From: Selaginella moellendorffii
Taxonomy: Eukaryota; Plantae; Lycopodiophyta
NCBI RefSeq assembly: GCF_000143415.4
Contig: NW_003314271.1
Span: forward strand, 1,470,092 to 1,534,091
DNA length: 64,000 nt
Direction: 5' to 3'
Shown here: in pieces, positions 13,301-53,901 of the stretch
Layout: every line of letters starts with the position of its first letter
Position numbering within the stretch: the stretch's first letter is position 1
Position numbers and translations under genes: made by a program
The notes under the pieces: generated by a model
What the model was told of the DNA's origin: nothing
Databases searched by the model: none
Seen by the model: the letters and a program-made list of their open reading frames with translations, nothing else

Positions 13301-13567
13301 ATCCAAGAGTGGTGGAGCTTCATCAGCCTATAGTATATATAGGTTAGCCTTGTTCTATATCTCCACAATCTGAATCAACGCCAGTCTAAGGCTTCTTCTT
13401 TGTTTCCACTAGCTTTTCTCTTTGTCTTTTTGCATTTTCCAATCTTGATCTTGTCAGGGGTCTTGACAGTTTGATTCAGATTGTGTTTTTTCGTTTTTTG
13501 ATTTAGCTCGTTTTGATTGTTTGATTACCTTTGCCTTTTTTTCCCCCTTTTTCCTTTCTTCTTGCCA

Positions 13568-14539: not shown

Positions 14540-14596
14540 GAGCTGTCTGTTTGGACTCCCCGAATAAAAATCACTTTTCTTCTTTATCAAGCTCCT
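14512..14596 (+). promoter_or_regulatory. Programmed -1 ribosomal frameshift signal (G GGA AAC + stem-loop/pseudoknot)
   Basis: Heptamer 14512-14518 in gag frame; 6-nt spacer; 11-bp stem 14525-14535/14546-14556; loop AGGAGCT (14538-14544) complementary to AGCTCCT (14590-14596); pol lies in the -1 frame. Confidence 0.85.
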
Positions 14597-17500: not shown

Positions 17501-18250
17501 TCTGTTCACTCCTCTCTTCGAGTTTCCCCCTTCTTTGCGAACTTTGGCCGAAATCCCCGATTCAATCTCTCACTTCCTTCTCCATCTGAATCCTCTCGTT
17601 CAAATCCCCACTCTGAGGCATTTATCTCCAACCTCCAGGAAATCCACAACTCCATCTCCTTCCACCTCCATCGTGCTCAGAAATTTCATAAAACATTTGC
17701 CAATGTCCATCGTCAGGATTGTCCCCCTTACAATATCGGGGATAAAGTCTGGCTCCTCAGGCGAAATATCTCCACTACCAAGCCCTGTCCAAAACTCGAT
17801 TTCAAATGCCTTGGTCCTTTCCCTATCACTGCCATCATTAATCCTGTCAATTATCGCCTTGCACTTCCCTCCTCATATCAAATTCACCCCGTTTTTCACT
17901 CCTCTCTCCTTGAGCCTTATATTCCCAATCCTATTCCAAATCGGGTCATTCCTCCGCCTCCACCAGTGCAGCTCGAGGATGGGTCTGAGTATGAGGTTCA
18001 GGACATCCTTGATTCCAAGATTTCACGGTCTAAACTCTACTATCTGGTGGACTGGAAGGGTTACGGACCTGAGGAACGCACTTGGGAACCTGCAGACAAC
18101 CTGCTTCATTCTCCTGACCTTGTTCAGGACTTCCACCGCCGCTATCCTTCTCGTCCCAGTCCTCATTCTTTTTCTCCATCTCCCATCCCTCGCCGCTCAT
18201 CTCATCCTCCTCTTCGTTCTCGTTCACATCCTCGTTCCACTCGTTCTTGA
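14512..18250 (+). pseudogene. pol: Chromovirus Pol (PR-RT-RNase H-integrase-chromodomain) with three visible lesions
   Basis: Protease LLDLGAT (DSG>DLG); frameshift at ~15335-15340; TGA at 15500-15502 (DY*GLNK). An open 914-aa stretch follows with YLDD, EADASDFAIGA, HHCC, SMDFL/SDRGPQF/GQSERT and chromodomain EYEVQDILDS..YYLVDWKGYGPEERTWEP. Confidence 0.93.
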
Positions 18251-21200: not shown

Positions 21201-22612
21201 AGGCCAATCGAGAAATTACCGGTGAGCTCACATGGGAGGATATCAGGGAGCAGCATATGGATCACCTCAAAGCCCTCCTCCTCTACTACGAACTTTGCCC
21301 AACAGATCGCACCATCGGCAAGTGAACAGCAGAAGTCTACGGAGCTCTACTCGGCTCATCATCTCCACGAGCTCCTTATCAAGCTTCTCAACCGCGCCAT
21401 CCTTGCCACACTCAACCAGAAGACCATGGGGACAGTAATCTTCCCACTGCTGATCACTACACCAAGCTCTTCCCAACAAGCAACTGTGGACAACCCAAAT
21501 GAACTCCACAGAACAAAGCAACAGCTCCGAAGAACACTCAGAATCAAAAGGAGCAACTCCCAGCAAGAAACCAAAGCTAGCATCTCAACAATCAGGCTCA
21601 ACTCACTCCAACAACACCAGCTCTAGCAACAAACACTCCAATGATTCAACTCCACTTTGCCGCCGCCTCACACACAAAACACCAACGAATCCAGCTCCAA
21701 AACTGCTGATCCGAGAGCACCTCATCATCAGCAACAATGAAGACAACTCACACCAGTTTCCACACTCACCCCAGAGCCCAAATCCACTCGAATCAGCCCC
21801 AAAACCGACAACTTCTCACAAACACATCAACATCACCAAAGAAAAACATCAGCTGCTCACCCAGAACTTAGTTTCTCCACCAGCTGAGAACAACATTCTC
21901 ACCACCCCGACCTCCTCAACACGTTCCACAAAAGAAAACATCGACTACCTTCACCAATCACTTGCAGAACACGGAACCATGCCTGCTCCAGCAAATGCCA
22001 CGACCAGGATTAACAAAACTTCTGCCCCTTCAACAAAATTCCAAGAGAAAAATTTGCCAACGGATACATTAATTTCAGCGCCACATCTGGGCCGTTCATC
22101 CAGCATCAAACTGAAAAGCTCCTCTCCACCCACCTCAAAGAATCCGGCCCGACCACATCACCCACATCCAACAAAGCAGATTAAGCCTCCAGCAACTTCA
22201 ACTCCCGGCAAGAACACAGCAAACCCTAGTGAGATACACCAGGATCACAAAGTAGGAGCAGGAGCAGCAGCCATGCCTCTGCCACAGAGTCAGGGATGCC
22301 GTGATTATGATGAGATCAAGAAGGAATACGAGGATAAACTCCGTGACCCAAGCTACTGCACCCGCAAGTTGTTCGAAGCCCTCGATCAACACATGTACCA
22401 CGAGCAAGCGAACCACTTCCCAACACCAGCTGACATCGCACAGCATCTTCTCAAGCAAGATTCCTCCATATACACCCGGGGAGCAGTCAAGAAGGAGTTT
22501 TACGAGCCTTTAAACCACCGACTAGACACTCAGCTCGAGGAGATGAAGCAAATCCGCACTGACCTCTGGGACATCAGGAAGATTGTCTCCAAGCAGCCAT
22601 CAACCCCATCAG

Positions 22613-24351
22613 TGTGAGACACAAAATCCCTAGGCCCCAAAGTGGAGCCAGAAAGGGTGCCACGTGGCAGTGGCTGAAGCGAGAGCCAAACAAGCGTAAC
22701 ACGTTTGGACCAAAAGCTCCGACTTGAAAAGTCAAGAGCGGGAGTGGAACTCCCAAAGAAGGGCTCGAGGAACGAGCACGAAGCGAGCAAAAAGCGAGGC
22801 TCCAAAAAGGGACCTAAAAGGACTAACACATGACACGTGGGAGTGTCCGAGATGGACTCGAGTTGGAGTCCGAAGTGGAGTCCGAGATGGACCCGAGTTG
22901 GAGTCCGAAGTGGAGTCCGAGATGGACCCGAGTTGGAGTCCGAAGTGGAGTCCGAGATGGACTCGAGTTGGAGTCCGAAGTGGAGTCCGAGATGGACCCG
23001 AGTTGGAGTCCGAAGTGGAGTCCGAGATGGACCCGAGTTGAAGTCCGAAGTGGAGTCCGAGATGGACCCGAGATGGAGTCCGAGATGGAATCCGAAGTGG
23101 AGTCCGAGGTGGACCCGAGATGGACCCGAGATGGAGTCCGAAGTGGAGTCCGAGGTGGACCCGAGATGGACCTGAGTTGGAGTCCGAGGTGGAGTCCGAG
23201 ATGGACCCGAGATGGAGTCCGAGATGGAGTCCGAGGTGGACCCGAGATGGACCCGAAATGGAGTCCGAGATGGAGTCCGAGATGGAGTCCGAGATGGACC
23301 AGAGATGGAGTCCGAGATGGAGTCCGAGATGGAGTCCGAGATGGACCAGAGATGGAGTCCGAGATGGAGTCCGAGATGGACCCGAGATGGACCCGAGATG
23401 GAGTCTGAGATGGAGTCCGAGATGGAGTCCGAAGTCGAGACCGAGACCGGGACTGAGACCGAGACCGAGACCGAGACCGAGATCGGGACCGAGACCGAGA
23501 CCGAGGCCGAGGCCGAGACCGAGCCCGAGCCCGAGTCCGAATCCGAGTCCGAGTCCGAGTCCGAGTCCGAGTCTGAGTCCGAGTCCGAGTCCGAGTCCGG
23601 AGCCTGAGAGGGTGAAAGCCCAAAGCGTTCGTCTCCCAGACCTTGGGGGGTTTGGTGAGCCCCAAAAGTATAGTAAGGGGGAGGACTGCAGTGGAGCCAG
23701 TTTGGCCAGGAAAGGCCAATTTGGCCCAAGAAGGCCGGACCCAGTGTTGGGTGATAAGCTGCCCACTGGGAAGTCCAAGACTAGAGTGAACACGGACCGA
23801 CAAGTGGGGTTGCTTGGTGAAGTGTTCAAGAGCCGGCTCTTGTTCCCCCGGGAGATCGATTGGCCGATGCTCCCAGTCCAAGTGTGGGTGGCACTACCTA
23901 CTTGGATACCAGGTGTGGCTCAACAGAACCTCGCTCTAAGCCCATGGCTAGAGCACCTAAGGGCAGAAGGCGAGGAGAGTACCCAGGTGGCTCGCGTAAG
24001 GCCACGGTGTTCCGAAATGTTGCCCCAAAGGCCCAGACTATGGAAAGGAAGAGGAGCAGTCCTTTGGGGTAGTGACCAAGGACACAGTCGTGTGGTGAGG
24101 AAGTCCTTGAGGACTGTGGGACTTGGTGGTCGGGCCAGTGGGTCTCGATCCAGTGGTAGTGTTGGCAAACACGGCCAGGGGCAGAAAGGGACTTAGTGGG
24201 GATGACAGAGGGATATTGGGGAAGGCTATTCTCGGGGCTAGCAAGTCCCAAGTCCTGGATTGGACTTATGGAGGTTGTGAATGAGACTCCTCCAAGTGGT
24301 CGGAGGTGTGGTTAAGTGACTAAAGTAGAATGGAAAATTTAGTCGCTTACA
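22613..24351. mobile_element. Probable solo LTR (1739 bp) inserted in the 3' ORF of the outer gypsy element
   Basis: Termini TGTGAG...CTTACA; 5-bp TSD ATCAG at 22608-22612 and 24352-24356; host ORF is continuous when the insert is excised; no coding motifs recognised inside. Confidence 0.85.
22845..23600. repeat. Compound tandem repeat: 35-bp higher-order units, then 11/12-bp units, then 6-bp CCGAGN units
   Basis: GATGGAC recurs every 35 bp from 22851 to 23061; then CCGAGATGGAGT/CCGAGATGGAC; then CCGAGA/CCGAGG/CCGAGC/CCGAGT. Confidence 0.95.
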
Positions 24352-24623
24352 ATCAGTAGCTCACGAATTCACCTACAAACTCAAATACGAAGAGCTCAAC
24401 ACCCGCTACCGGAAGCTCGAGGATGATCATACCGCCCTCCTAGCTGAGGTAGCCAACCTCCAAGAAGATGGGACAGATCCACCAGACAGTGTCCCCAACC
24501 ACGAGCTTACACTCCCACAGCAAAAATGTCGCCTCTATCGACTGGAGCAGCAGTAGCAACAAGCGATGGAGACTGACTATGTTTGCACCGAGGACGGTGG
24601 CTAGTTCTGTCAGGGGAGCAAAG

Positions 24624-24917
24624 TGTCTCAACCAAAAACAAGGTTCATGGGACTTCGACCTTGAACCCAGGGCTGCATCAGAGCGATAGATTAAATCATG
24701 CACAGCATATAGTATATGCTAGCAGTTAGAACCGCTAGCTTTTCAAAGGGGGGAATTTGAATTGTGGATCCCTATCTCCATTCCATCATTTTTCTTATCA
24801 ATACATAGCATTCTTTTACTTGTGCTTCTTCTCAACCCTTGGAGATTGGGCCTTTTTCTCTTTTGTTTTCTTACTAACAATAGATTTCCAGCGAAGAGGA
24901 GTTTTCACACTTCTTCA
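24624..24917 (+). repeat. 3' LTR of outer gypsy element (294 bp)
   Basis: Direct repeat of 7101-7388 followed by TSD CCACC. Confidence 0.95.
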
Positions 24918-25569
24918 CCACCACAGCTAGTTGCTCTCCCGGAAGTAGAAAAGGAATTACGAGCAAGAAGTCACGCTCCACCAGCTTGTGTTCTAGTCTC
25001 AAGTTCCACCTGCAAGATGCGACAAATTATAATTTCAACAACCGGATAGAACTATCTGAAGCTACCTGAAGCTCGAATCAATCTCTAGGTATGGATCATC
25101 GAGAGAACATTGTGCTAGGGAGCTGGGGTGAGAAAGATCATCTCGGCATGCTCCAGCTCTCCAAGATGAAAGAAATATCCAAGCAGCTGGTTCCAGGACA
25201 AAATATCATGTGGCAGCATTCTCTCCAAGATCGTGCTCATATCTCGGCCATGACAAACAGATTCCACACCGCATACACAATCTAGGTACCTTCAAACAAA
25301 AGACTTCACTCTCTCGAGAACAAGAACATTGCAAGGGAATTCCCAGAACTTACAATCAACTTAACTTGGGGCTTCTTCTCAACCTGGTGGACGTGTGCAA
25401 CAGCTACAGCTTCTCCCTTATGGGAGCACAGAGAAGCCTCTTGTTGACCTGGTGGACGCAAGCAATGGCAGCAGCTTCTTCCAGCTGTACAAGAGCCCTA
25501 AAGATTCGAGCTTGGCCTTGATCTTTTGCTTGCTCGAACTTGATTGCTCTCTCTCTTTTTTCCACATCA

Positions 25570-26340
25570 GGGAGGAAAATGCAAGGCATTGGGAAGCAAT
25601 TTAGAGCAGGGAGATCATTGCTCTCACAGATCATAAATGCCTCAGAACATGCCCAGAAGGGACATCCGCAACAAGTGCTTTAAGTGATGGGAGGACTAGA
25701 GGAAAAGCCCATCTAGCTTTGGAATGCAATGATAAATGTTGACGATGTCTAGGAACTTTGACGAGGCCATGGAGATGTTTAAGATGATCCCGAAACACTG
25801 AGATGAAGTGTCATGGAACCCCCTAGTCACTGCATTTGCCTTCAAGGGGGATTTTGAGGCAATATCAAGTTTGTAGTCCAAAATGCCCAAGACACTTCAT
25901 TGTTTTCTGATGGCAATGGCATGTTCTTGCTACCACGGCCCTCTGCTTTTGGAGCGTTATCAGCTGGGGGGTAGCTAGAATGTATGCCATCATTAGAGAA
26001 GATTTGAAAGTGATGGGGGTGCTTGAAAGTGATGGGGGTGCCTGAGTGGCTGATTGTCCAGACCATGGTCCCAATAGGGAAAGGGCACAGCAAGAATATT
26101 GAGACCCTTAGAAGATTATTTTCAAGGTTGTAGGAGCAACACCAAGAAGGCTTAGCATCAACAACTTCAACACTTTTTAGTTAGCGGGATTCATCCGGAC
26201 AATCGTCATCACTCATTGATTTTCTTGGATGCACTATTTCTTGGTGCATATAGAAGCGTGTTTGGTGATGATGCCAGAAAGCTCAACCAAGAGGCAATGA
26301 AGTTGCGAAGGCTTTAGAATGTTTTGCATATTGCACAGAG
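25570..26340 (+). pseudogene. PPR-derived gene fragment in tandem unit copy 1
   Basis: LWNAMINVD/MSRNFDEAMEMFKMIPKH*DEVSWNPLVTAFAFKGDFEA resembles S-type PPR motifs; paralogous to ~36400-37150 and ~41950-42737. Confidence 0.65.
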
Positions 26341-26461
26341 GCACTCCAAGAGCAAAACCAGGCACTCCAGGCAGCACTCTAGGGGCAAAACCAAGCACTC
26401 CAGGTGACACTCCAGGGGCAAATCTAGGCACTCCAGGCAATACTCAACCAGGCACTCCAAG

Positions 26462-32412: not shown

Positions 32413-33616
32413 TCAACCAGGCACTCTAGGGGCAAAAGCAAGGGCGAAAGAAGGGGCAAATTTCTGAGCAAGAAGCTGAGATAAGAAGTGCATTAGAAGA
32501 TATGGAGAGGTGGATCTCCAGTGGCATCATTCCAAGGTGATTGAGAAAACTACAAGCCTCTTACTAATGAATCAAAAAGTTAATGAGACAGGAAAAGCTT
32601 CTATGAATTCGAGCTTATACATAGAATATGTAATGTAAATATAGGATATTATATCTATAAATATATTGATTATATAGTAGGAAGTATACTTATTGCAAAT
32701 CAAGCAGTACAAGTAGCAAAAGATCACTTAAGTTTTTTAATGAACCCTATCTTTTGCTCTTGTCAAAATCTATATTCTCCTTGGTCTTTGAGAACACTAA
32801 ACACCTAAGATTCAGCACAGTCAAGCCAACTCTTTTATACATCAAAGACACGTGCAGTAGCACCAAAGGAAAGAAGATAAAATTTCCTCCTATTTCTAAT
32901 GTTTACAAAGCTTATTGATTGCACATGACACTTTGTTATGAAACCTCCTGTAGTGAGTGGTTTTGGCATGGCAGAAAATGGCTGTTTCAAAGCTTCATTG
33001 TGGTTTGCTAGAACCAAGAACATTCCATATATCACTAAGCTATTTAGTAACATTCTGATTGTTTGTCGTCTAAGTACACTATGGATGGGGACTTTATATG
33101 ACAACTTTTTGGCTTTTCAAGTTGTAAAACACACAAATAGTGGCAAGCTCGTAGTTGCAAGACCAGTGAAACTCCTCTAACAAGACCTAATTGAAAATAG
33201 TAAAGTGCTTATCTATTGCATGAGGAGTTGTTACTTGCTTTTGCTTTCAATTCCAGCCTCTTTGACCTCACAACATAGCATTTTTCTGTGGCCTCATTCA
33301 ATGCAATGCTAAGTCCTCCTTGATTGTTATTAGCTTTAATAACTTGAACTCTCACAAATTTATTATTATACAAGATTTATTGCTGCATGATTACCAGGCA
33401 CTCTGCACTAGATACCAAAGCAGATACCACCATTTTCATTCGCAGAAAAGAGAAACACTATGATTGCCTAGCAATAGTAGACTTAAGGAACTTCCCACTA
33501 TTTCTTGTTGTACATTTTGCAAGAAATATATTGCAAAATGAAAGAGAATCTCATTTGAATATTCTAAGTATGTTCTTAAACTAAGAAAATTTAGCATCAG
33601 TTTGTAGGGTTAGGGT

Positions 33617-34619
33617 ATGGCACAGCTGCTCTGAAAAGGAGGGGAGACTTCCTGGTGGAATCTGTAATGGATTGTTTAGGATAGAGGCGATGGCACTACA
33701 CGGCCTTCTGCACCATTGTGGACATGGCACTTCAAAGGCTAGACCACAGGATCCAACGTGTATTTGGTCACACGTGCGAGCAAGGTAGAGTGTTGGGTAT
33801 CAGCAGAATTGCAATGGAGGCCATTGTCTGCAAGAAACCCACGTCCTATGAAGAGCACTATGAAGGTATTTGGGATGGCGACCTCACTTACACCAATGTT
33901 CACCTTTGCGTCGACGACTACAAGAGGGCGCCAACAACGATCGAAGAAGTCTAGGAAGAGCTCTAGCAGTAGCAGAAACAGCAGCAGCTGCAGAAGATGC
34001 CATTGTTTAGTCGACGTCTGATCAAGTACATGAGGTTAGGCATGATACCCCATGAGATTCAAGGGTGTGGCCTGGTATCGAGAAAGTTTCGGCAGGAAAT
34101 GGTCTCTTAGGTGGAGCGGGACCTGTTCAGTGGTGCTGGATCACTGGAGATGCAGGCACGGCTAGTGTTTGATGCACGGATGCTGGCACATGAGTGGGAG
34201 TTTGTGTTGAGGAGTTTTGACAAGTCTAAGTCATTGGATAGATTGTTGTGGATGGACACGGACTGCTCACCTAATGTTGAATTCAATGACGGGATGAGTC
34301 AGGAGGATTTTGATCAAGAGACTTATGATGAACTTGTTGAGGACCTGGAAGCTGCAAAGATGGTGGTGCAGAATGGTGGCTTCAACAAGATTTGAACCTG
34401 GCCAGGGAATGCATGTGTGGATCTCTTCAACTTTCAGGTCGGGGGTGTGGTGAGCTCAAATTCAAACCTGAGAGAAACGATGAATACAATGACAACGTTG
34501 AGGATGACTTTAGCCTGGGTGAACACCCAAATAAGCAGCAAGTGAAATACAAGATGACCAAGAGAGGTTTGGGACCTCTCAAAAGAAGTTCAAACTTTGA
34601 TCCGAGCGAGGAAGAATAA
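33617..34619 (+). pseudogene. Unknown ~340-aa ORF, copy 2
   Basis: Mostly in one frame, with CAG>TAG, TGG>TAG and CGA>TGA stops and two indels. Confidence 0.7.
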
Positions 34620-37600
34620 GAAGTAATGAGATTCTTGTAAGGTTAAATCCAATGCTGTGACTCCCAACAGTCAATAGGGTCCACTTTATTCAACATAGGG
34701 TCTCTCACAAAGCTGGCAAAAGACAAGGACAACTTCCTGGGCTCCATTCTCCTACTTTTTTGGGCAGAAAACTACCATGTGAGTGTTGAGGATTTCCTCA
34801 CTGGAGCTGGAGCACCTTTTCTATCTAATGTATATATTGTTTGATAGAAAGATAGACTAATGATGCAAGATGGTTCACTGTTGTGTATACCTTTCCAAAC
34901 AATAGTGATTGATGGATGCTAGAATTGATGCTTTATGATGGGTAGTTAACGGTTATTTTTCTTTTAGAATCTATAGATACTCAGACTGCATTTAATGGTG
35001 TGGAGGAGAGGTAGCATTAAATCTAAAACCCTCCACACAAGATCGGAAATACCAAGGCTAGCGTATGCAGCGAACGTGTAGGAAATTTTTCTTTTTTCTT
35101 TCTTTTCAGTCTCTAGAGAGGCTCATGCACTCATGATGTTGAGACGATGATTAAGTTCAACTCACACTAGCGGGATTTAAGATTCCCCAACATCATCAGA
35201 TATAGATTGAAGTTTTATCGAGTTCTTCTCAAGTCGTGATAGGTCATCCATGCTGAATCACCCCCAAAAACATTTTGTACACTACCAACTAGCTGTTTTT
35301 CTCTCACATAACAGCAGCAGTGGCCGAGAACAAAAGAGAGATCATAGCAAAAAAGCCAAGCATTTCTCCTTCTCGTGTCGTCACGCTGGAGTTAGCCATG
35401 CGAGCTCGGCCCTGGATCAAGCAGCCTCTCCAGCGTTGCTTCTGCAATGATGCTCGTGGCAATGGAACTTTTCCAGCGTCCAAAACATGCTTGACAAGCG
35501 TGGCTGCACTCACAGCAAGAGTCAATTTCCCCTTCAAAGAACTGCTATCATAACAAAACTGTCAAATTACAGCTTGCAACCATCAAACCGAATCCCCTCT
35601 CAGTTGCCTCGATGCAGTGATCGTGTTTGCTTTGCTTTTGCTAGACTTGCTTTGCCTAGTTGAAATATCAAACAAAGAGAGATGACAAGCCGCACCTCCT
35701 TTGCTGTATATCTGCAATTTTGACTGTCGTGATCCACTCATAAATCCTCGACCACCACAGCTAGTTGCTCTCCTAGAAGTAGAAAAGGAATTACGAGAAA
35801 GAAGTTGCACTCCACCAGCTTGCATTCTAGTCTCAAGTTCCACCTACAAGACGCGACAGATTATAATTTCAATAATCGGATAGAACTATTTGAAGTTACC
35901 TGAAGCTCAATCTCTAGACATGGATCATTGAGAGAACATTGCACTGGGGAGCTGGGGTGAGAAAGATCATCTCAGCATGCTCCAACTCTCCAAGATTAGA
36001 GAAACATCCAAGCAGCTGGTTCTAGGACGAAATATCATGCGGTCGCATTCTCTCTAAGATCGTGCTCATATCTCAGCTGTAACAAACAGATTCCACATCG
36101 TGTACACAATCTAGGTACATTCAAACAGAAGACTTCACTCACTCGAGAACAAGAACATCACAAAGGAACTCCCAGAACTTACAATCAACATAACTTACGG
36201 CTTCTTCTCAACCTAGTGGACGTGCGCAATGTTTGCAGCTTCTTCCTTGTGGGAGCACAGAGAAGCCTCTTCCTGACCTGGTGGACACAAGCAACGGCCA
36301 CAGCTTCTTCCAGCTCTACAAGAGCTTTAAAGATTCAAGCTTGGTCTTGATCTTTTGCTTGCTCGTCCTTGCTTGCTCTCTCTCTCTTTTCCACATCAGG
36401 GAGGAAAATGCAAGGCACTGGGAAGCAATTCAAAGCAGGGAGATCGTTGCTCTCACGAATCATAAATGCCTTAGAACATGCCCAGATGGGACATCTGCAG
36501 CAAGTGCTTGAAGTGATGGGAGGACTGGAGGAAAAGCCCATCTAGCTTTGGAATGCAATGATCCAAATGTTGACAATGTCTGGGAACTTTGATGAGGCCG
36601 TGGAGATGTTTAGGATGATCCCGAAACACTGAGATGAAGTGTCATGGAACATTGCATTTGCCTTCAAGGGGGATTTTGAGGCAACATCAAGCTTGCAGTC
36701 CAAAATGCCCAAGACACTTCATTGTTTTCTGACTGCAAAGACATGGCAATGACATGTTCTTGCTACCTTGGCTCTCTGCTTTTGGAGCATTATCAACTAG
36801 GGGGAAGCTAGAATGTATACCATCATGAGAGAAGATTTGAATGTGATGGGGGTGCTTGAGTGGACAATTGTCCAGGCTGTGGCCCCAATGGGGAAAGGGC
36901 ACAGCAAGAATATTGAGACCCTTAGAAGATTATTTTCAATGTTGTAGGAGCAATGCTAAGAAGGCCAAGCATCAACAACTTTGGCACTTTTTAGTTAGTG
37001 GGATTCATCTGGACAATCATCATCACTCATTAATTTTCTTGGATGCACTATTTCTTGGTGCATCTAGAAGCGTGTTTGTTGATGATGTCAGAAATCTCAA
37101 CCAAGAGGCAATGAAGTTGTGATGGCTTCGGAATGTTTTTGCACATTGCACAGAGGCTCTCCAAGAGCGAAACCAAGCACTCCAAGCAACACTCCAGGGG
37201 CAAAACCAAGCACTCCAGGTGACACTCCAGGGGCAAAACTAAGCACTCCAGGCAGTACTCAACCAAGCACTCTACGGGCGAAAGAAGGGGCAAATTTCTG
37301 AGCAAGAAGCCGAGATAGGAAGAAGTGCATTAGAAGATATTAAGAGGTGGATCTCTAGTGGCATCATTGCAAGGCAATTGAGAAAACTACAAGCCTCTTA
37401 CCAACGAATCAAAAAGTTAAAGAGATACGAAAAGCTTCTGTGAATTCAAGCTTATACATAGAATATGTAATGTAAATATAGGATATTATATCTATAAATA
37501 TAACGATTATATAGTAGGAAGTATACTTATTGCAAATCAAGTAGTAAAAGTATCACTTAAGTTTTTTAATAAACCCTATCCCTTGCTCTCGTCAAAATCT

Positions 37601-38446
37601 CTATTCTCTTTAGTCTTTGAGAACACTAAACACTTGAGATTCAACATAGTTGAGCCAACTCGTCTATACATCAAAGATGTGTGTAGCAACACTATAGGAA
37701 AGAAGATAAAATTTCCTCCTATTTCTAATGTTTACAAAGCTTGTTGATTGCACATGACACTTCATTATGAAACCTCCTGCAGTGAGTGGTTTTGGCATGA
37801 CAGAAAATGGTTGTTTCAAGGCTTCATTGTGGTTTGCTAAAACCAAGAACATTCTATATGTCGCTAAGCTATTTAGTAACATTCTGATTGTTTGTTGTCT
37901 GAGTACACTATGGATGGGGACTTTATACGACAACTTTCTGGCTTTTCAAGTTGTAAAACACACAAATAGTGGCAAGCTTGTAGTTGCAAGACTAGTGAAA
38001 CTCCTCTAACAAGACCCAATTGAAAATAGTAAAGTGCTTATCTATTGCATGAGGAGTTGTTACTTGCTTTTGCTTTCAATTCCAGCTTCTTTGACCTCAC
38101 AACATAGCATTTTCTGTGGCCTCGTTCAATACAATGCTAAGTCTTCCTTGATTGTTATTAGCTTTAATAACTTGAACTCTCACAAATTTATTATTATACA
38201 AGATTTATTGTTGCATGTTTACTAGGCACTTTGCACTAGATACCAAAGCAGATGCCACCATTTTCATTCCCAGAAAAGAGAAACACTATGATTGCCTAGC
38301 AACAGTAGACTTAAGGAACTTCCCACTATTTCTTGTTGTACATTTTGCAAGAAATATATTGCAAAACGAAAGAGAATCTCATTTGAATATTCTAAGTATG
38401 TTCTTTACTCTAAAAACTATTTAGCATCAGTTTGTAGGGTTAGGGT
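33617..38446 (+). repeat. Tandem unit copy 2 (4830 bp, no TE insertions)
   Basis: Period defined by TTTGTAGGGTTAGGGTATGGCACA at 33601 and 38431; provides the empty alleles of the gypsy, LINE and foldback insertion sites. Confidence 0.93.
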
Positions 38447-41400
38447 ATGGCACAACTGCTCATGAAAAGGAAGGGTGACTTCCTAGTGGACTCTGTAATG
38501 GATTGTTTGGGATAGAGGCGATGACACTATATGGCACTTTGAAGGTGTCGCAAATGTGACTTTGGGTATTGAAAGATACTTGTCGACCAATCCTTATGGA
38601 CACTCTTTCCTTTCTATTGCGACAGCAGGAGGTTGGTATTACTAGTCCCTTTTATGGTCTTCACCCAAGCTAGTTGAGAAGCTGGTCAGCACATGTGCAC
38701 TTAGACCAGAAGGGCACTAAGAAAGGAAATCCTAAATTGTTATTAAGTCAAGCATACTTGATATGATGATAAGAAACTCATGTTGTTGACTTGCACTTGT
38801 TAGTGTTGGAAACCCCCTTGATATTGAGTTTAGTCCCTCAATATCGTTATATGATAGCTTACCATGTCTACCATCATATAAAGATATTGAGGGATTAGAC
38901 TCAATATCAAGGGGGTTCCTAACACTAACAAATGCAAGCCAACAACATGAGTTTCTCATCATTGTGTCAAGTATATTTGACTTAATGACAACTTAGGATT
39001 TCCTTCCTTCATGCCCTTCCAGTCTAAGTGCACATGTGCTGACTAGTTTCTCAACTAACTTGGGTGGAGACCATAAAAAGGACCAGTAATACCAACCTCC
39101 TACTGTCGCAACAGAAAGGAAAGAGTGTCCATAAGGACTGGCCGACAAGTATCTTTCGATACCCAAAGTCACATTCGCGACAGAAGGCTAGACTACAAGA
39201 TCCAGCGTGTATTTGGTCACACATGCGAGCAAGGCAAAGTGTTGGGTATCAGTAGAATTGCGATGGAGGCCATCATCCATGAGAAGCCCACATCCTATGA
39301 AGAGCACTACGAAGGTATTTGGGACGACAACCTCACTTACACCAACATTCGCCTTTGCATCGACGACTACAAGAGGGTGCCAACAACGATCGAAGCAATC
39401 TCGGAAGAGCTCCAGCAGCAGCAGAAACAATAGCAACCACAAGAGATGCCATTATTTAGCAGACATCTGATCAAGTACATAAGGTTAGGCATGATACCCC
39501 ATGAGATTCAAGGGCATGGCCCAGGATCGAGAAAGTTTCGGCAGGAAATGGTCTCTTGGGTGGAGCGAGACTTGTTTGGCGGTGTTGGATCGCTAGAGAT
39601 GCAGGCATGGCTAGTGTTTGATGCGCAGATGTTGGCACATGAGTGGGAGTTGGTGTTGAGGAGTTTCAACAAGTCTAATTCGTTGGATAGATTGCTGCGG
39701 ATGGACACGAATTGCTCACCTAATATTGAATTCGATGACAAGATGAGTCATGAGGATTTTGATCAAGAGACTTATGATGAACTTGTTGAGGACTTGGAAG
39801 CTACAAAGATGGTGGCGTAGAATGGTGGCTTCAACAAGATTTGAACCTGGCCAGGGAACGCGTGCAAGGATCTCTTCAACTTTCAGGTGGGGGGTGTGGA
39901 GGAGATCATCAAGCGATATGGTGAGCTCAAATTCAAACCCAAGAGAAACGATGAATATGACGACAACGTTGAGGATGACTTCAGCCTAGGCAAGCACCCA
40001 AATAAGCAACAAGTGAAATACAAGATGACCAAGAGAGGTCTGCGACCTCTCAGAAGAAGCTCAAGCGCGAGCAAGAATAAGAAGTAAGGTTAGATCCAAT
40101 GCTGTGACTCCCAGCAGTCAATAGGGTCCACTTTCTTCAACACATGTCTCTCACGAAGCTAGCAAAAGACAAGGACGACTTCCTAGGAGCAAGTGCCACC
40201 CTCCATTCTCCTACTTTCTTGGGCAGAAAACTACCATGCAAGTGTTGAGGATTTCCTCACTGGAGCTGGAGCACCTTTTCTATCTAATGTATATATTGTT
40301 TGATAGAAAGATAGACTAATGATGCAAGATGGTTCACTGCTGTGTTTACCTTTCCAAACAATAGTGATTGATGGATGCTAGAATTGATGCTTTACGATGG
40401 GTAATTAACAGTTATTTTTCTTTCAAAATCTACAGATACTCAGACCGCATTTAATGGTGTGGAGGAGTCGCAGCATTAAATCTAAAACCCTCCACACAAG
40501 ATCGGAAATACCAAGGCTAGTGTATGCAGTGAACGTGTAGGAAATTTTTCTTTTTTCTTTCTTTTCAATCTCTAGAGAGGCTCATGCACTCATGATGTTG
40601 AGATGATGATTAAGTTCAACTCACTAGCGGGATTTAAGAGTCCCCAACATCATCGGATATCGATTGAAGTTTGATCGAGTTCTTCTCAAGTCATGACAAG
40701 TCATCCACGTTGAATCACCCCCAAAAAATTTTTGTACACTACCAACTAGTTTTTTTCTCTCAAACAACAGCAGTAGTGGCCAAAATCAAAAGAGAGATCA
40801 TAGCAAAAAAGCCAAGCATCTCTCCTTCTCATGTTCCATTATTTTCTTTCTGACGCTATAGATCAAGGAGGATGTGAGAGAAATGCAAGCAAGCTAGGAG
40901 AGGAACAATTTCAAGGATTTGCTTGGATGAGGAAAGTTTGGTGTCGTCACGCTGGAGTTAGCCACACAAGCTCGGCCCTGGATCAGTCGGGCAGCCTCTC
41001 CAGCACTGCTTCTTCAACGATGCTTGCGGCGATGGAACTTTTCCAGCATCCAAAATGTGCTTGACAAGCGAGGCTGCACTCACAACAAGAGTTGATTTCC
41101 CCTTCAAAGAACTGCTATCATAACAAAACTCTCAACTTATAGCTTGCAACCAAACCGAATCCCCTCTCGGTTGCCTCGATGCAATAATCGTGTTTGCTTT
41201 GCTTTTGCTAGAGCTGCTTTGCCTAGTTGAAATATCAAACAAAGAGAGATGACAAGCCGCACCTCCTTTGTTGTGTATCTGCAATTTTGACTGTCGTGAT
41301 CCACTCATAAATTCTCGACCACCACAGCCAGTTGCTCTCCTAGAAGTAGAAAAGGAATTATGAGCAAGAAGTTGCACTCCACCAGCTTGCATTCTAGTCT

Positions 41401-42830
41401 CAAGTTCCACTTGCAAGACACAACAAATTATAATTTCAACAATCGGATAGAACTATCTGAAGTTACCTAAAGCTCAAATCAATCTCTAGGCATGAATCAT
41501 CGAGAGAACATTGCACTGGGGAGCTGGGGTGAGAAAGATCATCTTAGCATGCTCCAACTCTCCAAGATTAGAGAAACATCCAAGCAGCTGCGACGGCATT
41601 CTCTCTAAGATCGTGCTCATATCTCGGCCGCGACAAACAGATTCCACATCGCATATGCAATCTAGGTACCTTCAAACAAAAGACTTCACTCACTCAAGAA
41701 CAAGAACATCGCAAGGGAACTCCTGGAACTTACAATCAGCATAACCTAGGGCTACTTCTCAACCTAGTGGATGCGCGCAACGATTGTAGCTTCTTCCTTG
41801 TGGGAGCAGGGAGAAGCCTCTTCCTAACCTGGTGGACGCAAGCAATGGCTGCAGCTTCTTCCAGCTCTACAAGAGCCCTAAAGATTTGAGCTTGGCCTTG
41901 ATCTTTTGCTTGCTCGACCTTGCTTGTTCTCTCTCTCTTTTGCGCATCAGGGTGGAAAATGCAAAGTGCTGGGAAGCAATTCAGAGTAGGGAGATCGTTG
42001 CTCTCACGGATCATAAATGCCTCAAAACATGCCCAGAAGGGACATCCGTAGCAAGTACTTGAAGTGATGGGAGGACCGGAGGAAAAGCCATCTGGCTCTG
42101 GAATGCAATGATCCAAATGTTGACAATGTCTAGGAACTTTGACGAGGCCATGGAGATGTTTAGGATGATCCCGAAACACCGAGATGAAGTGTCATGGAAC
42201 TCCTTGGTCACTGCATTTGCCTTCAAGGGGGATTTTGAGGCAGCATCAAGCTTGTAGTCCAAAATGCCCAAGACACTTCATTGTTTTCTAACTGTAGAGA
42301 CATGGCAATCACATGTTCTTGCTACCACAGCCCTCTGCTTTTGGAGCATTATCAGCTAGGGGGAAGCTAGAATGTATGCCATCATGAGAGAATATTTGAA
42401 AGTGATGGGGGTGCCTAAGTGGACGATTGTCCAGGTTGTAGCCCCGATGGGGCAAAGGAAGCATAGCAAAAATATTGAGATTTTTTAAGATTATTTTCAA
42501 TGTTGCAAGAGCAATGCCAACATGGCCCAACACCAACAACTTTGGGATGTTTTAGCTAGCGAGACTCATCTGGATAATCATCATCACTTGTTGATTTTTT
42601 TGGATGCACTATTTCTTGTTGCATCTACAAGTGTGTTTAGTGATAATGTCAGGAAGCTCAACCAAAAGGTAATGAAATTGCGAAGGCTTCAAAATGCTTT
42701 TGCACATTGCACGGAGGTGATCCAAGCACGAAACTAGACACTCTAGGCGGCACTCTAGAAGCAAAACCAAGCACTCTAGGCGACACTCCAAGGGCAAAAC
42801 CAGGCACTTCATGCAGCACTCTAAAGGCAA
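38447..42830 (+). repeat. Tandem unit copy 3 (3'-truncated; carries the foldback insertion)
   Basis: Collinear with 33617-~37220. Confidence 0.9.
38546..39182. mobile_element. 637-bp palindromic (foldback) non-autonomous element with TG...CA ends and 5-bp TSD
   Basis: Arms 38546-38857 and 38871-39182 pair in register without indels (~33 mismatches, nearly all transitions). TSD GAAGG at 38541-38545 and 39183-39187. The insert is absent from copy 2 (~33735). Confidence 0.92.
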
Positions 42831-42856: not shown

Positions 42857-43941
42857 CCCCTTCTTTCATCCCTGGAATGTCTGGTTTCACCCCTAGAGTA
42901 CCTCAGTGCAGTGAGCAAAGATCTTTTGCAGCCTTCTTAACTCCTCTAGCTTGAAGTCGAGCTGTCTCACGTCATCACCAAACACTTTCATAGATACACA
43001 AAGAAAGAGAGTGTCCAGGAAAACAAATGAGTGATGACAATTGTCTGGACAAATCCCACTGGCTAAAAGCTGCCAAAAGTGTTAGTGTTAGGCTTTGAAG
43101 GCACTGCTCTTGCAGCATTGGAAGTAATCCTTAAGAGTCTCAATTGACTTCTTCCTTTTCACCTTTCTTGGGACAATGGCCTGAACAATCCTCCACTCAA
43201 GCACTCACATCACTTTCAAATCCTCTCTCATGACAATGTATATCTTGGCTTTCCCCCAACTGAGAATGCTCCAAAAGCAAAATGCCGAGGTAGCAAGCAC
43301 ATGGCATTGCTAGGTCTCTGCCATCAAGAGTCTTGGGCATCTTGGATTGCAAGCTTGAAACTGTCTCAAAATCCCTTTCAAGGCAAATGCTGTGATTAAA
43401 GAGTTCCAAGAAACTTCATTTTGGTGTTTTGGGATCATGCTAACATATCCAAAGCCTCGTCGAAGCTCCTGGACTTTATCAACATTTGGATCATCGCATT
43501 CCAGAGCCAGATGGGGCTGTTTCTTGGATCCTCCCATCACTTCAAGCACTTGTTATGGATATCCCTCTTGGGCATGTTCCAAGACATTTATGATCTATGA
43601 GAGCAATGATTTCCCTGCTCTAAATTGCTTCCTAGTGCCCTACATTTTTCTCCTTGATGCGGAAAAGAGAGAAAGAGAGCAAGCAAGGTCGAGCAAGCAA
43701 AAGATCAAGGGCAAGCTCAAATCTTTAGGGCTCTTGCATAGCTGGAAGAAGCTGCGGCCGTTGTGTAAGTCCACCAGGTGGGGAAGAGGCTTCTCCGTGC
43801 TCCCACAGGGAAGAAGCTGCGGCCATTGCACATGTCCACCAGGTTGAGAAGAAGCCCCAGGTTATGCTGATTGTTAAGTTCCAGGAGTTCCCCTCACAAT
43901 GTTCTTGTTCTCGAGTGAGTGAAGTCTTCTATTTGAAGGTA
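42857..43941 (-). repeat. Inverted, more diverged copy of the PPR-fragment half of the tandem unit
   Basis: Reverse complement matches ~41666-42830 (EVSWNSLITAFALKG; GGAGTTCCCCTCACAATGTTCTTGTTCTCGAGTGAGTGAAGTC). Confidence 0.85.
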
Positions 43942-43959
43942 TGCAGGTTGCATACACAT

Positions 43960-44187
43960 GTGTGAATCGCTTCAACTTTCAGGTAGGGGGTGTGGAGGAG
44001 ATCATAAAGCAATATGGTGAGCTCAAATTCAAACCCAAGAGAAACAATCAATATGACAACAATGTTGAGGATGAATACAGCCTGGGTGAGCACCCAAATA
44101 AGCAGCAAGTGAAATACAAGATGACCAAGAGATGTGACCTCTCAAAAGAAGCTCGAGCTCTCCCAGCGAAGAAGAATAAGAAGTAAT
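43960..44187 (+). repeat. Fourth partial copy of the unknown ORF 3' end
   Basis: FNFQVGGVEEIIKQYGELKFKPKRN...KYKMTKR. Confidence 0.85.
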
Positions 44188-48367: not shown

Positions 48368-50161
48368 TCACACGTCCACGGGCAGGCTCATTCCTGGAGG
48401 CTTTCTCACGCCCTTGTCCTTCATCGCCTCCCACAAAGCGGCTACTTGTTCTCGGTTACCAGTAGAGGCATGGATATTAGCGAGCAAAACATAAGGTGAA
48501 CTGTTACCTGGGTCCAACGCAATGAGCCCCTCAGCTGCTCGGCCTCCGAATTGAGCATTACGTTGGACAGTAGACGCACCGAGAAGAACTTCGTACTGCG
48601 CAGACTCAGGCACGAAAGGCATGGTTTTGATCAGCTCCTCCGCCTTGGACAGCCGGCCAGCTCGTCCGAGAACGTCAACCATGGCATAGTAATGCTCCTT
48701 TTCGTGCTGGACGCCGTGATCAACGACCATCGACGAGAAGTAGTCCCGGCCCTTGTCCAGGCAGCCGCCATGGCTGCAAGCACCGAGGACAATCGTGAAG
48801 CTGATCTCGTTTGGCCTGCTTCCGTCCAAGAGCATGCGGTGGAACGTTTCAATGGCCAGCTGAAACTCTCCCGACTGAGCACAGGCTCCAAGCATCGAGT
48901 TCCAGGAAACCAAGTTACGCTCCGGCATCTCCTCGAACAGGGACAGTGCTCGGTCGACGTCCATGCCCAGAGCATACGCTTGCAAGAGAGCGGTCCAGGA
49001 GACGATGTTCTTCTCCGGCATGCTGTCAAACACTGCTCGAGCCTCGGACAAGAGTTTGTGCTGCGACAAGGCGACGATCATGGCTGTCCAGGAGACAACG
49101 CTGTGCTGCGGCATCCTCGACATCACTTCTCGAGCGTCACTGGGTGTTGCCGCCGCCGCCGCCGCTGCTGCGACGATCATCGTGTTCCAGGAAACTATGT
49201 TCCTCCGCGGCATTAGATCGAAGACTTCCTTAGCATCGGCGGAGCGGCCGTTCTGGGCGAAGGCAGTGACAATGGCAGTGGAGGGAACGAGGCCGTGCTC
49301 GGGCATCTTGCGGAAGAACTCGGCGGCTCCGTGAGGATCTCCGGCCTGCCCGAGAGCCACCATGGTCGCCGTCCACAGCACGACGTTCTTCTCGCGAGAG
49401 TTTTCAAAGATAAACTTGGCCTCCTCCCAAGAGCTTGTCAAGCCGTACGCCGTGATCATCGCGCTGGCTGAGACAACGTCGTGGCTGGGCATCTTTCCGT
49501 ACAGCTCCTTGGCTTCTTCAAAGTGCCCACATTGGGCATATGCGTGGATCATAGGACTCCAAGACGTGATATCTCTCTCGGGCATTAGATCGAAGAGTAC
49601 TTTTGCGTTTGTGGATTGGGCTATTTGGCAGTAGCCAGTGATAATCCCATTCCAAGACACAACGTTACACTGTGGCATCCTTTGAAAGACAGCCTTAGCG
49701 ATTTGCAAATCCCCGATTTGGGCATTTGCTTGGATTAGGGTATTCCAAGATACTATGTTTCTGTGGGGCATAGAATCGAAGGTCTCTTTTGCGTCGATCG
49801 CGCGGCCGCATTGCGCGTAGGCCGCAAGAATCGCATTGGTAGCGACTGGATCGCGCGCTGGCGCCAGGTCGTGGATCGATCTTGCTTCTTCCAGGTGCCC
49901 ATTTTGGGCAAATGCGGCAACGAGGATGTTCCAGGAGAAGAGATTGCGGCAGGGGATGGAATCGAAGGCCTGGCGCGCCGATTCGACGCTGCTGCATTGG
50001 GCGTAGCTCGCGACGACGAGATTTCGCAGGAATGTGTTGCCGCGGTGGCTGGTGTGGAGGATCTGGGCGTGGAGCTGCCGGATGCGCAGAGTGTTCTTGG
50101 CGTTCTTGAGGAGGTGGGCGAAATAGTCTTGCTCCTTGAGAGCCTGGGCCCTGTAGCTCAT
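48368..50161 (-). CDS. PLS-class pentatricopeptide repeat protein with tandem S motifs and C-terminal E domain (candidate organellar RNA-editing factor)
   Basis: 597-aa intronless ORF; repeated MP.RN.VSWN motifs; HYYAMVDVLGRAGRLSKAEELIKTMPF; SSPYVLLANIH...GVRKPPGMS. Confidence 0.93.
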   Translation of the reverse strand: MSYRAQALKEQDYFAHLLKNAKNTLRIRQLHAQILHTSHRGNTFLRNLVVASYAQCSSVESARQAFDSIPCRNLFSWNILVAAFAQNGHLEEARSIHDLAPARDPVATNAILAAYAQCGRAIDAKETFDSMPHRNIVSWNTLIQANAQIGDLQIAKAVFQRMPQCNVVSWNGIITGYCQIAQSTNAKVLFDLMPERDITSWSPMIHAYAQCGHFEEAKELYGKMPSHDVVSASAMITAYGLTSSWEEAKFIFENSREKNVVLWTATMVALGQAGDPHGAAEFFRKMPEHGLVPSTAIVTAFAQNGRSADAKEVFDLMPRRNIVSWNTMIVAAAAAAAATPSDAREVMSRMPQHSVVSWTAMIVALSQHKLLSEARAVFDSMPEKNIVSWTALLQAYALGMDVDRALSLFEEMPERNLVSWNSMLGACAQSGEFQLAIETFHRMLLDGSRPNEISFTIVLGACSHGGCLDKGRDYFSSMVVDHGVQHEKEHYYAMVDVLGRAGRLSKAEELIKTMPFVPESAQYEVLLGASTVQRNAQFGGRAAEGLIALDPGNSSPYVLLANIHASTGNREQVAALWEAMKDKGVRKPPGMSLPVDV

Positions 50162-51113: not shown

Positions 51114-52536
51114 TCATACGCACACCTCCGTGGTGTCGTCAAAATAAGTGCACCGATGGTGGATCGCAGTGTAAGGCGCCTCCGAATCGAACTTGGCCTT
51201 CATGCAGCGCCAGACGACATCACAGCGCCGCGGCACAAACCGGATGGGATGGACCTTGACACGCCCTGGGAACTCCCCGCCGAGCTTGACGATCGCGCGA
51301 GGTATCTGGGTCCGAAACTTGGGCGGCTTTTTGGTAGCGTACACAACCCCGCTCACGTCCAGGCGTGTCACGCAGCTGCTGCTCTCCACGAGCTCCCGCA
51401 CAAAGCTGATCTCGTCGCGCGCCCACCCCGCTATTCCGCAGGCCACCTCAATGCGGACACACAATGGAACCTCCCTGCTGCTCCACTTGTCGAGGCTCAA
51501 GCACTAGAGGATCATATACCACGTCTTCAATGCAGAGAAGCTGTCAAGAGAATGTAAAAGTTACCTTGATGGACGAGTGAGAAAGTGTGAACACCTCCAG
51601 GGCGGGGAATGGCTCCAGAAGCTGCGCAAGGTTGAGGGACCCCGGGTCGAAGATGGACGATTTCACAAACAAGTCAAGCCGCGTGATGCCACTCACGGCC
51701 GACGGTTGGCAAACAAAACGCTTGAGAATTTGCGTGACATCGGCAGCGCTTTGGCAGGTGTTTGTGAACGTTAACTTGTTGAGCTTGGACGTGCGCAGGC
51801 CCTGGATGATCCGCACGCCCGTGTGCGGCTTGATCCACTCGACGTTGCACGTAGACGGCAAGAGCTCCAGGCGCAGCTCCAGGCGCGGCACCGCGCTGAC
51901 GGACATCCACCTGAGCTTGGGCATGTCCAGGGCGAGAGAGAAGTTGGCGACGCTCTTGCCACGCAATGCAAGACAGTCGAGGCTGTGGCTCTTGAGCAAA
52001 TACGTCCCGGGCGACTCCACCAGCAGCAGCATCAGCTGGATGTAGACGAGCGAGGGGCACAAGTCGAGGAGCTGCTGCATTGTGCCCACGTCCAAGCCTG
52101 TGAGCATGACGCAGTAGACGAGACTGGGAAGCATTGGAGCCGCTGGCGTCGTCGTGGTGATCGCGCCGCCAAGCTTGACATCGTTGATGATGTGGAGGCA
52201 CCGCAGCTGCTGGCAGGCGACAATGCTGGACCAGAAGCCATCCACATCGACGCTGAGCGTAAGGGAGTGAAGAGTTTTTCCGATCGCCGGTAGCCAGCCA
52301 AGGGAAGAGCGTGGAGCGCTGTGAACGGACAAGGAGCGGAGATTGCTGGCGCTGCTGTCAAACCAGGAAAGGAAGCCGTGCTGCTCATCCTCCAGGCTGA
52401 AATGTGTGACGAGCTTTGCCAGGCGCGCCCACCTCTTGCTCACCAGACTGCACCAATACAAGTGGCGCGAGGAGACGATTAGAGACAGGATCCGGGCGAG
52501 CACATCGTCGGGAAGATCATCCTCTCCACACTCCAT
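51114..52536 (-). CDS. F-box/LRR-like protein (2 exons: 52536-51565, 51503-51114)
   Basis: N-terminal F-box DDLPDDVLARILSLI..CSLVSKRWARL; Leu-rich LRSLSV/LRCLHI repeats; GT-AG intron keeps the frame. Confidence 0.85.
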
Positions 52537-52550
52537 TGACCTAACCCTAG

Positions 52551-52680
52551 GGCTGCAAGCACCGAGGACAATCGTGAATTTGGCCTGCTGCCGTCCAAGA
52601 GCATGCACTGGAAGGTTTCGGTGGCCAGCTCAAACACTCCCGACAAGTGCCCGCATTGGGCATATGCGTGGATCATAGGA
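52551..52680 (-). pseudogene. Patchwork PPR fragments
   Basis: Match 48772-48875 and ~49520-49557. Confidence 0.75.
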
Positions 52681-52740: not shown

Positions 52741-53901
52741 ATGGAGAACCGTGCTTGTCTATTGTTTCTGTGTCTGTTCGCGTTCCGACTTGGGAGCAGG
52801 ACGAGAGTTATTGCCACGAAGAGATAAAGAAGACACACTTAGACAACCTAAAGTTTATCCAGGCGGAAAATCAGAAGCAGAATGACTATGTTCTCGAGGC
52901 CAACAAATTCGCATATCTGACTAATGCAGAGTTTCGAGAGAGGTTCTTGACGACCATCACGCCTCGAGAACCGTTTGGCAGCTTCAGTCACTCGGCCGCA
53001 GAGTCCCTCCCGGAGGTTGTCGACTGGCGGACAAGAGGAGCAGTCTGTCCGGTTCGATCAGGCTCACATGGTAACTTACTTCCTTTTCTTTTCTTTTCTA
53101 TGTTTTCACCACCTGGAACTTATGACAGGAAGCTCGGTGGTCTTCTCTGCCGCCGCAGCAGCCGAAGGTGCCAATGCCATTGCGACGCAAGTGTCTGTTC
53201 GAGGAGGCGTTCTTCAAGTGCAGCAAAAACGATCTCGGTCACTACGATAAGGCCTTCGAGTTCATCATCGAGAATGGTGGCATAGACAGTGAAGGGTTTG
53301 GCCTCAACTTCCGGAACAAAACTTGCTTCTTCCTTAGGGGCACTCCCTTTATAAGTTCTAAGCTGATCACACTCTCTCTGTTCTGCTGTCTGTTGTAGAG
53401 GGACTTTACAATCGATGGCTACGAGCATGTTCTTCCAAACAACGAGGAGGCCCTGAAGAAGGCCGTCGCTCATCAGCCCGTGAGCGTGATGATCGACGCA
53501 GGTTGTCCCGCTTTCAAGTTCTACAAATCAGTAAGTTTTTCCTTCTCAGTAACAAAGGTGCAATGATTTTGTCATGACAGGGAATCTTGACAAGCTCTTG
53601 TGGAACCGACCTCAATCACGCGGTGACGATCGTAGGATATGGCATTACCAGCGACGGAAAGAAGTACTGGATCGTCAAGAACTCATGGGGGACCGAGTGG
53701 GGAGACGATGGTTACGTTTATATGCAACGAGACACTGGAGTTTCTACTGGTCTTTGCGGGATCAACATGAACCCATCGTATCCAACCAAGCAGGGACTCC
53801 CAAAGATCCAAGACGAAGGTCTTTCGACTTCCAACGCTGCTAATATCAACGCTGATCTCTGGCCAGTCTCGGGCCTCTACTTCAGCAGGCTAGAGGAGTG
53901 A
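52741..53901 (+). pseudogene. Papain-like (C1A) cysteine protease, probably inactive
   Basis: I29 prodomain NKFAYLTNAEF; LPEVVDWRTRGAV; intact 3' half ([37 protein letters not shown]). The QGxCGSCWAF catalytic segment has decayed to GSSVVFS and the 5' half is frameshifted. Confidence 0.8.

Follow-up and report, generated by a model that had tools for sequence, protein, structure and literature searches.

A 637-bp palindromic insertion in Selaginella moellendorffii that is probably a self-copied fragment of a long terminal repeat retrotransposon

A 64-kb window of the Selaginella moellendorffii genome (scaffold GL377575.1 of assembly GCA_000143415.2) contains a 637-bp element that is palindromic over its full length and is flanked by a target-site duplication (TSD). 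Coordinates given without a locus name are those of this window, the whole stretch of DNA that we analyzed. The element is a real, old, discrete insertion made in one piece. Its arms match the start of the unique 3' region (U3) of long terminal repeat (LTR)-like units in other loci, and we consider it probable (roughly 60%) that it is aborted plus-strand DNA from the polypurine tract of an LTR retrotransposon that copied itself and was integrated with a 5-bp duplication. Most likely, then, it represents a known kind of element in an unusual derived form and not a new class of mobile element.

Results

The element is a discrete insertion with integrase-type ends

A repeat search paired 38546-38855 with 38873-39182 as inverted sequences of 310 nt that are 90% complementary. 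Base-by-base alignment lengthened the arms to 312 nt, with 33 mismatches, no gaps, and a 13-nt loop between them (Table 1). This agrees with a sequence-only reading of the same DNA, which had described a full palindrome with its two arms in register. The mismatches comprise 31 transitions and 2 transversions, a divergence of about 10.6%. A transition-dominated divergence of this size is unlike a chimeric read or a mis-join. Therefore, an assembly artefact, which had already been judged unlikely, can be ruled out. Folded as single-stranded DNA, the element forms one hairpin (-281.6 kcal/mol; z = -52 compared with shuffled sequences).

Table 1. Positions of the element, its surroundings, and its relatives in other loci (K2P, Kimura two-parameter distance; RT, reverse transcriptase)
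Feature	Position	Strand	Remarks
Whole fold-back element	38546..39182	+	637 bp; termini TGTCGC...GCGACA; K2P between arms 0.118 (31 transitions, 2 transversions)
Left arm	38546..38857	+	312 nt; matches LTR-like units of L004 and L005 over their first ~312 nt, from U3 start
Loop	38858..38870	+	13 nt; prolongs left-arm homology into parent-type unit on + strand only
Right arm	38871..39182	-	312 nt; reverse complement of left arm
TSD, left copy	38541..38545	.	GAAGG
TSD, right copy	39183..39187	.	GAAGG
Empty target site in tandem sister copy	33734..33738	.	Single AAAGG, otherwise collinear context
Host segment copy 2, carrying the insertion	37276..42821	+	~4.8-kb noncoding unit, locally triplicated; K2P among host paralogues 0.069-0.113
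Host segment copy 1 (tandem sister)	32442-37272
Host segment copy 3	4837-7100 plus 24918-26457		Split by nested LTR element
Gypsy element	7101-24917		TSD CCACC (5 bp); LTR pair K2P 0.047
Chromovirus	13082-18648		TSD CTCAC (5 bp); LTR pair K2P 0.029
Relative A	L004 (GL377663.1) about 6213 down to 5352	reverse	72% over 243 nt, E 2e-26
Relative B	L004 14467-15152		69% over 312 nt, E 1e-21
Relative C	L005 (GL377742.1) about 21264 down to 19542	reverse	73-77%, E 2e-28; holds ~770-bp foreign insertion
Relative D	L004 from about 21877		Short copy

The insertion lies in one of three local copies of a host segment, which are 87 to 92% identical to each other in a self-BLAST of the window. The tandem sister has a single, empty target site at the corresponding position, and copy 3 likewise lacks the element (about 4877-4996). 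With these two empty paralogous sites, TG...CA termini that follow the TGTNR pattern (as defined in PMC2836005), and a 5-bp TSD, the element has the features of an integrase-type insertion. These observations bear out the earlier claim of a discrete insertion with a GAAGG duplication and integrase-type ends. Compared with the sister, copy 3 is rearranged around the exact target region (about 4920-5010), where a small deletion precedes a short tandem expansion.

The element is noncoding. Its longest open reading frame (ORF) encodes 76 amino acids, and its longest stop-free stretch is 86 codons. A protein word search with this stretch returned no relatives from the protein collection, so there is no credible ORF, as had been noted from the sequence. 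A primer-binding site, polypurine tract, R region, gene, and internal region are all absent from it. Therefore, the insertion could not be copied again. Its repeats are inverted and 13 nt apart, in place of the two direct LTRs and internal region of an LTR retrotransposon, a terminal-repeat retrotransposon in miniature (TRIM), or a large retrotransposon derivative (LARD). Tandem Repeats Finder detected no tandem subrepeats of the FB-type foldback kind in 38500-39230, and an Rfam scan (E <= 1) detected no hammerhead of the kind found in retrozymes within the element. The Rfam matches that the element did give were to long-hairpin MIR models, on both strands, at 35 to 87 bits against gathering scores of 71 to 200. 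Subthreshold matches of this sort are generic for any long hairpin and do not place the element in a curated microRNA family.

The arms match the start of LTR-like units in other loci

The arm sequence does not occur elsewhere within the window. We used BLAST to look for relatives in 220.7 kb of S. moellendorffii DNA from ten loci that surround annotated proteins; about 205 kb of this is outside the window. Together with the window, this makes a sample of about 270 kb, a size that cannot show a palindrome to be unique in the genome. Four relatives were found in two of the loci (A to D in Table 1), together with a small extra fragment in a third (L003). Identity to the arm was 66 to 77%, with E values from 1e-14 to 1e-28. 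All four relatives are nonpalindromic. A, B, and C are alike over about 680 to 850 bp and lose their similarity at a common right end, which is ..CA or a transition variant of it. Therefore, the arm covers no more than the outer ~327 nt of a unit that is longer and has TG...CA ends.

The surroundings of these units suggest what they are. B starts with TGTCACAAATGT, a terminus that matches that of the element. In both B and C, homology runs about 340 bp outward beyond the terminus, at 74 to 80% identity, and the 12 to 13 nt just before TGTCAC or TGTTAT are purines only. Upstream of B, on the same strand, is an RT remnant (RVT_1, E 2.4e-8) with 33 to 36% identity to the gypsy RTs of the window. 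RT, purine tract, and TG... follow one another at B as they do toward the 3' end of an LTR retrotransposon. At D, the same terminus adjoins unrelated DNA, as would be expected for a 5' or solo LTR. From these contexts, we infer that the TG...CA unit is an LTR and that the element's terminus is the start of its U3. Units A to C thus link the element to LTRs, through the purine run at B and C and the RVT_1 remnant at B. LTRs of the parent type are fairly common in the ~270-kb sample (four copies plus the fragment).

A and B are inverted around an annotated PPR gene (10001-12976) in L004, with their U3 starts facing each other, and an assembly gap (6544-8903) lies between them. The insert in C (L005 20277-21044) is another repeat, which has several partial copies at 6100-7600 of L009.

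We also considered the opposite polarity, in which the terminus would be the end of U5 and the strand that snapped back would be R-U5 minus-strand strong-stop DNA. In its favor were a TATA-like block close beyond the turn-back point and, in L004, an RT remnant on the minus strand with a spacing like that in the window's chromovirus. However, the purine run and the 340 bp of outward homology shared by B and C, together with the same-strand RT remnant at B, led us to reject it. A primer-binding site begins with TGG, opposite the CCA end of a tRNA, and there is also no TGG directly after the LTR end on that polarity.

Collinearity with the LTR-like unit extends past the arm on one strand only

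The two arms are not equivalent when compared with the relatives. From the left terminus, the alignment of the element with A, B, and C covers the arm and the 13-nt spacer and goes up to position 324-327. A local alignment with C reaches 343 but is poor past about 328, and the BLAST alignment with C stops at element position 328. Read from its right terminus, the element aligns with the relatives only to 310-314. The relatives themselves run on for 350 to 500 bp beyond the turn-back point, with sequence that is absent from the element. Since the left arm and loop are collinear with the unit up to ~327 and the right arm is so only to ~312, the element consists of unit positions 1 to ~327 followed by the reverse complement of positions 1 to 312. 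A solo LTR would hold the whole unit of about 690 to 850 bp. Microhomology at the junction is at most 2 nt.

This one-sided collinearity suggests that the left arm is the originally templated copy and the right arm is the copy-back product. Among the explanations offered in the sequence-only reading was a snap-back cDNA carrying the same attachment end twice. Arms that come from the U3 end of an LTR-like unit, with a loop that is collinear on one strand only, are what such a molecule would have. In LTR elements, the polypurine tract primes plus-strand DNA synthesis, which normally begins exactly with base 1 of U3. The turned-back strand starts at U3 base 1 and runs 5' to 3' into the LTR, which fits plus-strand strong-stop DNA.

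The insertion is older than the neighboring LTR retrotransposons

Distances between the arms, between the host paralogues, and between the LTRs of the two retrotransposons in the window (Table 1) place the insertion before both of these LTR elements. It is roughly contemporary with the duplication of the host segment, which it must postdate. Of the derived T/A states, 18 are in one arm and 13 in the other. This split of the transitions, together with the absence of indels, fits arms that were identical at insertion. The ratio of transitions to transversions is 31:2 in the arms and 347:72 in the host paralogues, a difference that is not significant (P = 0.14). At about half of the CHG sites, the two arms are not the same. 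The transition-rich mismatches and the CHG differences suggest that the hairpin was heavily methylated, although this is not significant.

Other features of the window

The window contains two verified LTR retrotransposons, a gypsy element and a chromovirus (Table 1). The sequence-only reading had counted three LTR-type insertions near the palindrome, of which these two were verified. The chromovirus is the younger of the pair and is nested in the RT/RNase H region of the outer gypsy element, whose pol is thereby split once. Within the outer element, there is also a tandem array (22845-23599) with 12-bp and 35-bp periods followed by a 6-bp period, which produces spurious long ORFs on both strands.

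The host unit that carries the palindrome has a further partial copy, inverted, at 42900-43968. No Pfam domains were found on the ORFs of this unit, and there were no copies of it in the ~205 kb of other sampled S. moellendorffii DNA. The triplicated unit resembles a local segmental duplication more than a dispersed repeat.

The window contains further ORFs. Intact PPR ORFs are present at 48368-50161 (minus strand, 597 amino acids) and 60060-61802 (plus strand, 580 amino acids). Although the scaffold is annotated, the first of these has no exact entry in the protein collection, where its best relatives have no more than 38% identity, and it is probably a gene that the annotation lacks. An ORF at 52755-53285 has a cathepsin propeptide inhibitor (I29) domain and is probably an exon of a papain-type protease gene. 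There is an F-box ORF at 51544-52608, and the ORF at 2110-3624 is 100% identical to part of an S. moellendorffii protein.

Discussion

How might one end of an LTR come to be inserted as a palindrome? We propose that the parent was a Ty3/gypsy-like LTR retrotransposon, the nascent plus strand of which halted after about 327 nt. Its 3' end would then have folded onto itself about 13 nt upstream, using at most 2 nt of microhomology, and would have been extended back to its own 5' end, by RT and not by a host polymerase. After conversion to a duplex, the product would be a 637-bp palindrome with the U3 attachment end (TG...) at both termini. The integrase of the LTR element could have joined these two identical ends concertedly, leaving the GAAGG duplication. 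The hairpin might have become a duplex if the polypurine primer was used again with strand displacement. Alternatively, the host might have copied a hairpin-capped fragment, as described in PMC10766183. Later decay would have been chiefly by transitions of the C-to-T type.

There are partial precedents for such a product. Defective copy-back genomes of RNA viruses arise when the polymerase leaves its template and copies the nascent strand, so that the same terminus is found at both ends. Those genomes replicate as RNA, whereas the S. moellendorffii element is a single integrated DNA copy that cannot replicate. Another likeness is an established side reaction of RT, documented in vitro, in which minus-strand strong-stop DNA serves as its own primer (PMC6088434). 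There, too, the nascent strand folds back and RT extends it to a hairpin. However, the documented case concerns the minus strand, takes place in vitro, and is described as a dead end, whereas the polarity of the element is that of the plus strand and it has been integrated and fixed in the plant germ line. We searched the literature and came upon neither an integrated snap-back LTR nor a foldback with a 5-bp TSD in plants. The element is also like the solo LTRs and other insertions of Ty3/gypsy elements in its TGTNR ends, its 5-bp TSD, its lack of coding sequence, its position among nested LTR elements, and its homology to an LTR-like unit that has a polypurine tract before it. It differs from them in having the first ~327 nt of a ~690- to 850-bp LTR plus the reverse complement, so that both ends are U3 and there is no U5 end.

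Several points weigh against an origin by snap-back reverse transcription. A hairpin has one open end, and the conversion to a two-ended duplex is a step that we can only postulate. None of the sampled loci held a relative at full length, complete with two LTRs, a primer-binding site, and an integrase gene. As a result, the identification of the unit as an LTR comes from the polypurine tract, one RT remnant, and the boundaries of the units. Even at B, the distance between the RT remnant and the LTR is only about 340 bp, and near B we could detect RT fragments but no RNase H or integrase domain. Copy B must therefore be deleted, or the RT belongs to a neighboring element. The relatives are also only 66 to 77% identical to the arm, so the true parent is not among them, and the copy number of the palindrome comes from the ~270-kb sample and not from the whole genome. 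Finally, the arms are slightly more diverged (0.118) than are the host paralogues (0.069 to 0.113), which predate the insertion, although a binomial comparison with the immediate flanks gave no significant excess (P = 0.057).

A different route to the same molecule is that the host made the fold-back. Linear retrotransposon DNA would have broken about 327 bp from its U3 end, and the resected end would have folded and been filled in. The hairpin-capped fragment would then have been copied to an inverted dimer and inserted by integrase. All of the structural evidence fits this equally well, and the two routes are inseparable by sequence alone. This one also accounts directly for a two-ended duplex. 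In yeast, fold-back priming at breaks has been documented, as has extrachromosomal DNA with hairpin caps that yields inverted dimers (PMC10622511, PMC10766183), and those products resemble the element in their inverted duplication, short unique spacer, and minimal microhomology. However, they are chromosomal rearrangements that the host's replication or repair produces, whereas the element is at a foreign site with precise termini and a TSD. A break, host repair, and then recapture by integrase are all required. Furthermore, there would be no special reason for the copied strand to start at the plus-strand initiation site, though any intact U3 end would serve. For these reasons, we consider a host-made fold-back unlikely, though it deserves to be taken seriously.

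The element might instead be a nonautonomous foldback or miniature inverted-repeat transposable element (MITE)-like DNA transposon. It would then have been moved by a DDE transposase of the Ginger/TDD or GingerRoot-like kind, and A to D would be the long terminal inverted repeats (TIRs) of its partner. It does have the appearance of MITEs and foldbacks, being small, noncoding, fully palindromic, and flanked by a TSD, and fully palindromic MITEs are common among class II families. However, its arms come from one LTR end, and its 5-bp TSD fits none of the five main plant superfamilies in P-MITE, going by the TSDs given in the sequence-only reading (TA, TAA, and 2-3, 8, or 9 bp). The P-MITE list for S. 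moellendorffii has a single MITE family, with 73 copies. The terminus does not bound an element in B or C, where the purine run and the shared 340 bp come before it. The relatives occur in the context of 3' LTRs or 5'/solo LTRs and not in that of TIRs, and no autonomous partner with matching TIRs was found among them. Nor did we find a second palindromic copy in the window or in the ~205 kb of other S. moellendorffii DNA, or any element-scale pair of inverted units in the sampled loci. With nonpalindromic relatives, no second palindrome in the ~270-kb sample, and no signals in the element for being copied again, the idea of a family of nonautonomous foldback or MITE-like elements is not supported. 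Exact-pattern scans of metagenome contigs, made with the 24-nt terminus and with a 24-nt block conserved in both arms, gave zero matches.

Mobilization by a Ginger or TDD transposase, which the sequence-only reading had also raised, is not supported either. TGTNR ends are common to Ginger elements and gypsy LTRs, and the element shares such ends, an integrase-related chemistry, and long TIRs with Ginger1, Ginger2/TDD, and GingerRoot (PMC2836005, PMC6839031). However, the TSDs of Ginger1 (CCGG or CCGT) and metazoan Ginger2 are 4 bp (PMC2836005), and that of the element is the 5-bp GAAGG. GingerRoot is present in the congener S. lepidophylla and in other lycophytes, but it has a TSD of 6 bp (rarely 7 or 8 bp), mostly TA..TA ends, and TIRs of 100 to 150 bp (PMC6839031), where the element has 5 bp, TG..CA, and 312-nt arms. 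TDD-4 and TDD-5 do give 5-bp TSDs (PMC2836005), and their ends fit as well. However, TDD elements are known only from Dictyostelium; the lineage of the host speaks against them, as does the LTR context in which the relatives occur. A Pfam search of the window's ORFs found no partner transposase of this or any other kind, and no DDE or integrase gene outside the LTR elements. Altogether, we regard a DNA transposon origin as improbable.

It is more doubtful still that the palindrome was made in place, with the distal part of an ordinary solo LTR or element being replaced by an inverted copy of the proximal part. Inverted duplications do occur in chromosomal DNA, but this one would have had to stop exactly at the old boundary, beside a TSD that is intact at all five positions. 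It would also have left the arms in perfect register without an indel and no leftover of the remaining LTR. Apart from an assembly artefact, the least credible explanation is a solo LTR from a family with palindromic LTRs, which would have TG...CA ends, a 5-bp TSD, no coding capacity, and an LTR-like length, but A to D are not palindromic and extend 350 to 500 bp past the turn-back point.

The element is one decayed copy that has no autonomous function, and its direct biological weight is modest. If it did arise by snap-back reverse transcription, it would be a natural record, fixed in the germ line, of strong-stop DNA snap-back. It would also mean that the integrase of an LTR element accepts a molecule with the same (U3) end twice. 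Both events are mostly known from test-tube work. There is a practical consequence for annotation, because pipelines may take such objects for novel MITEs or foldbacks. They should be checked against LTR ends before a family is named.

The element also has a counterpart in maize, where Mu killer is a naturally occurring inverted duplication of a transposon's promoter-bearing terminus, with the potential to produce hairpin RNA against its own family (PMC3440606). Mu killer differs in that it came from a DNA transposon; it measures about 4 kb, its transcripts arise by read-through, and it has been shown to silence MuDR (PMC3440606). By analogy, and only as speculation, copy-back LTR insertions might be a recurrent by-product of bursts of LTR retrotransposons. 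Their U3 hairpins, if transcribed, might seed silencing small RNAs as Mu killer does for MuDR, and the share of transitions in the arms might be a trace of methylation. A snap-back origin would thus suggest a simple route by which a genome could gain a promoter-directed hairpin against an active retrotransposon family.

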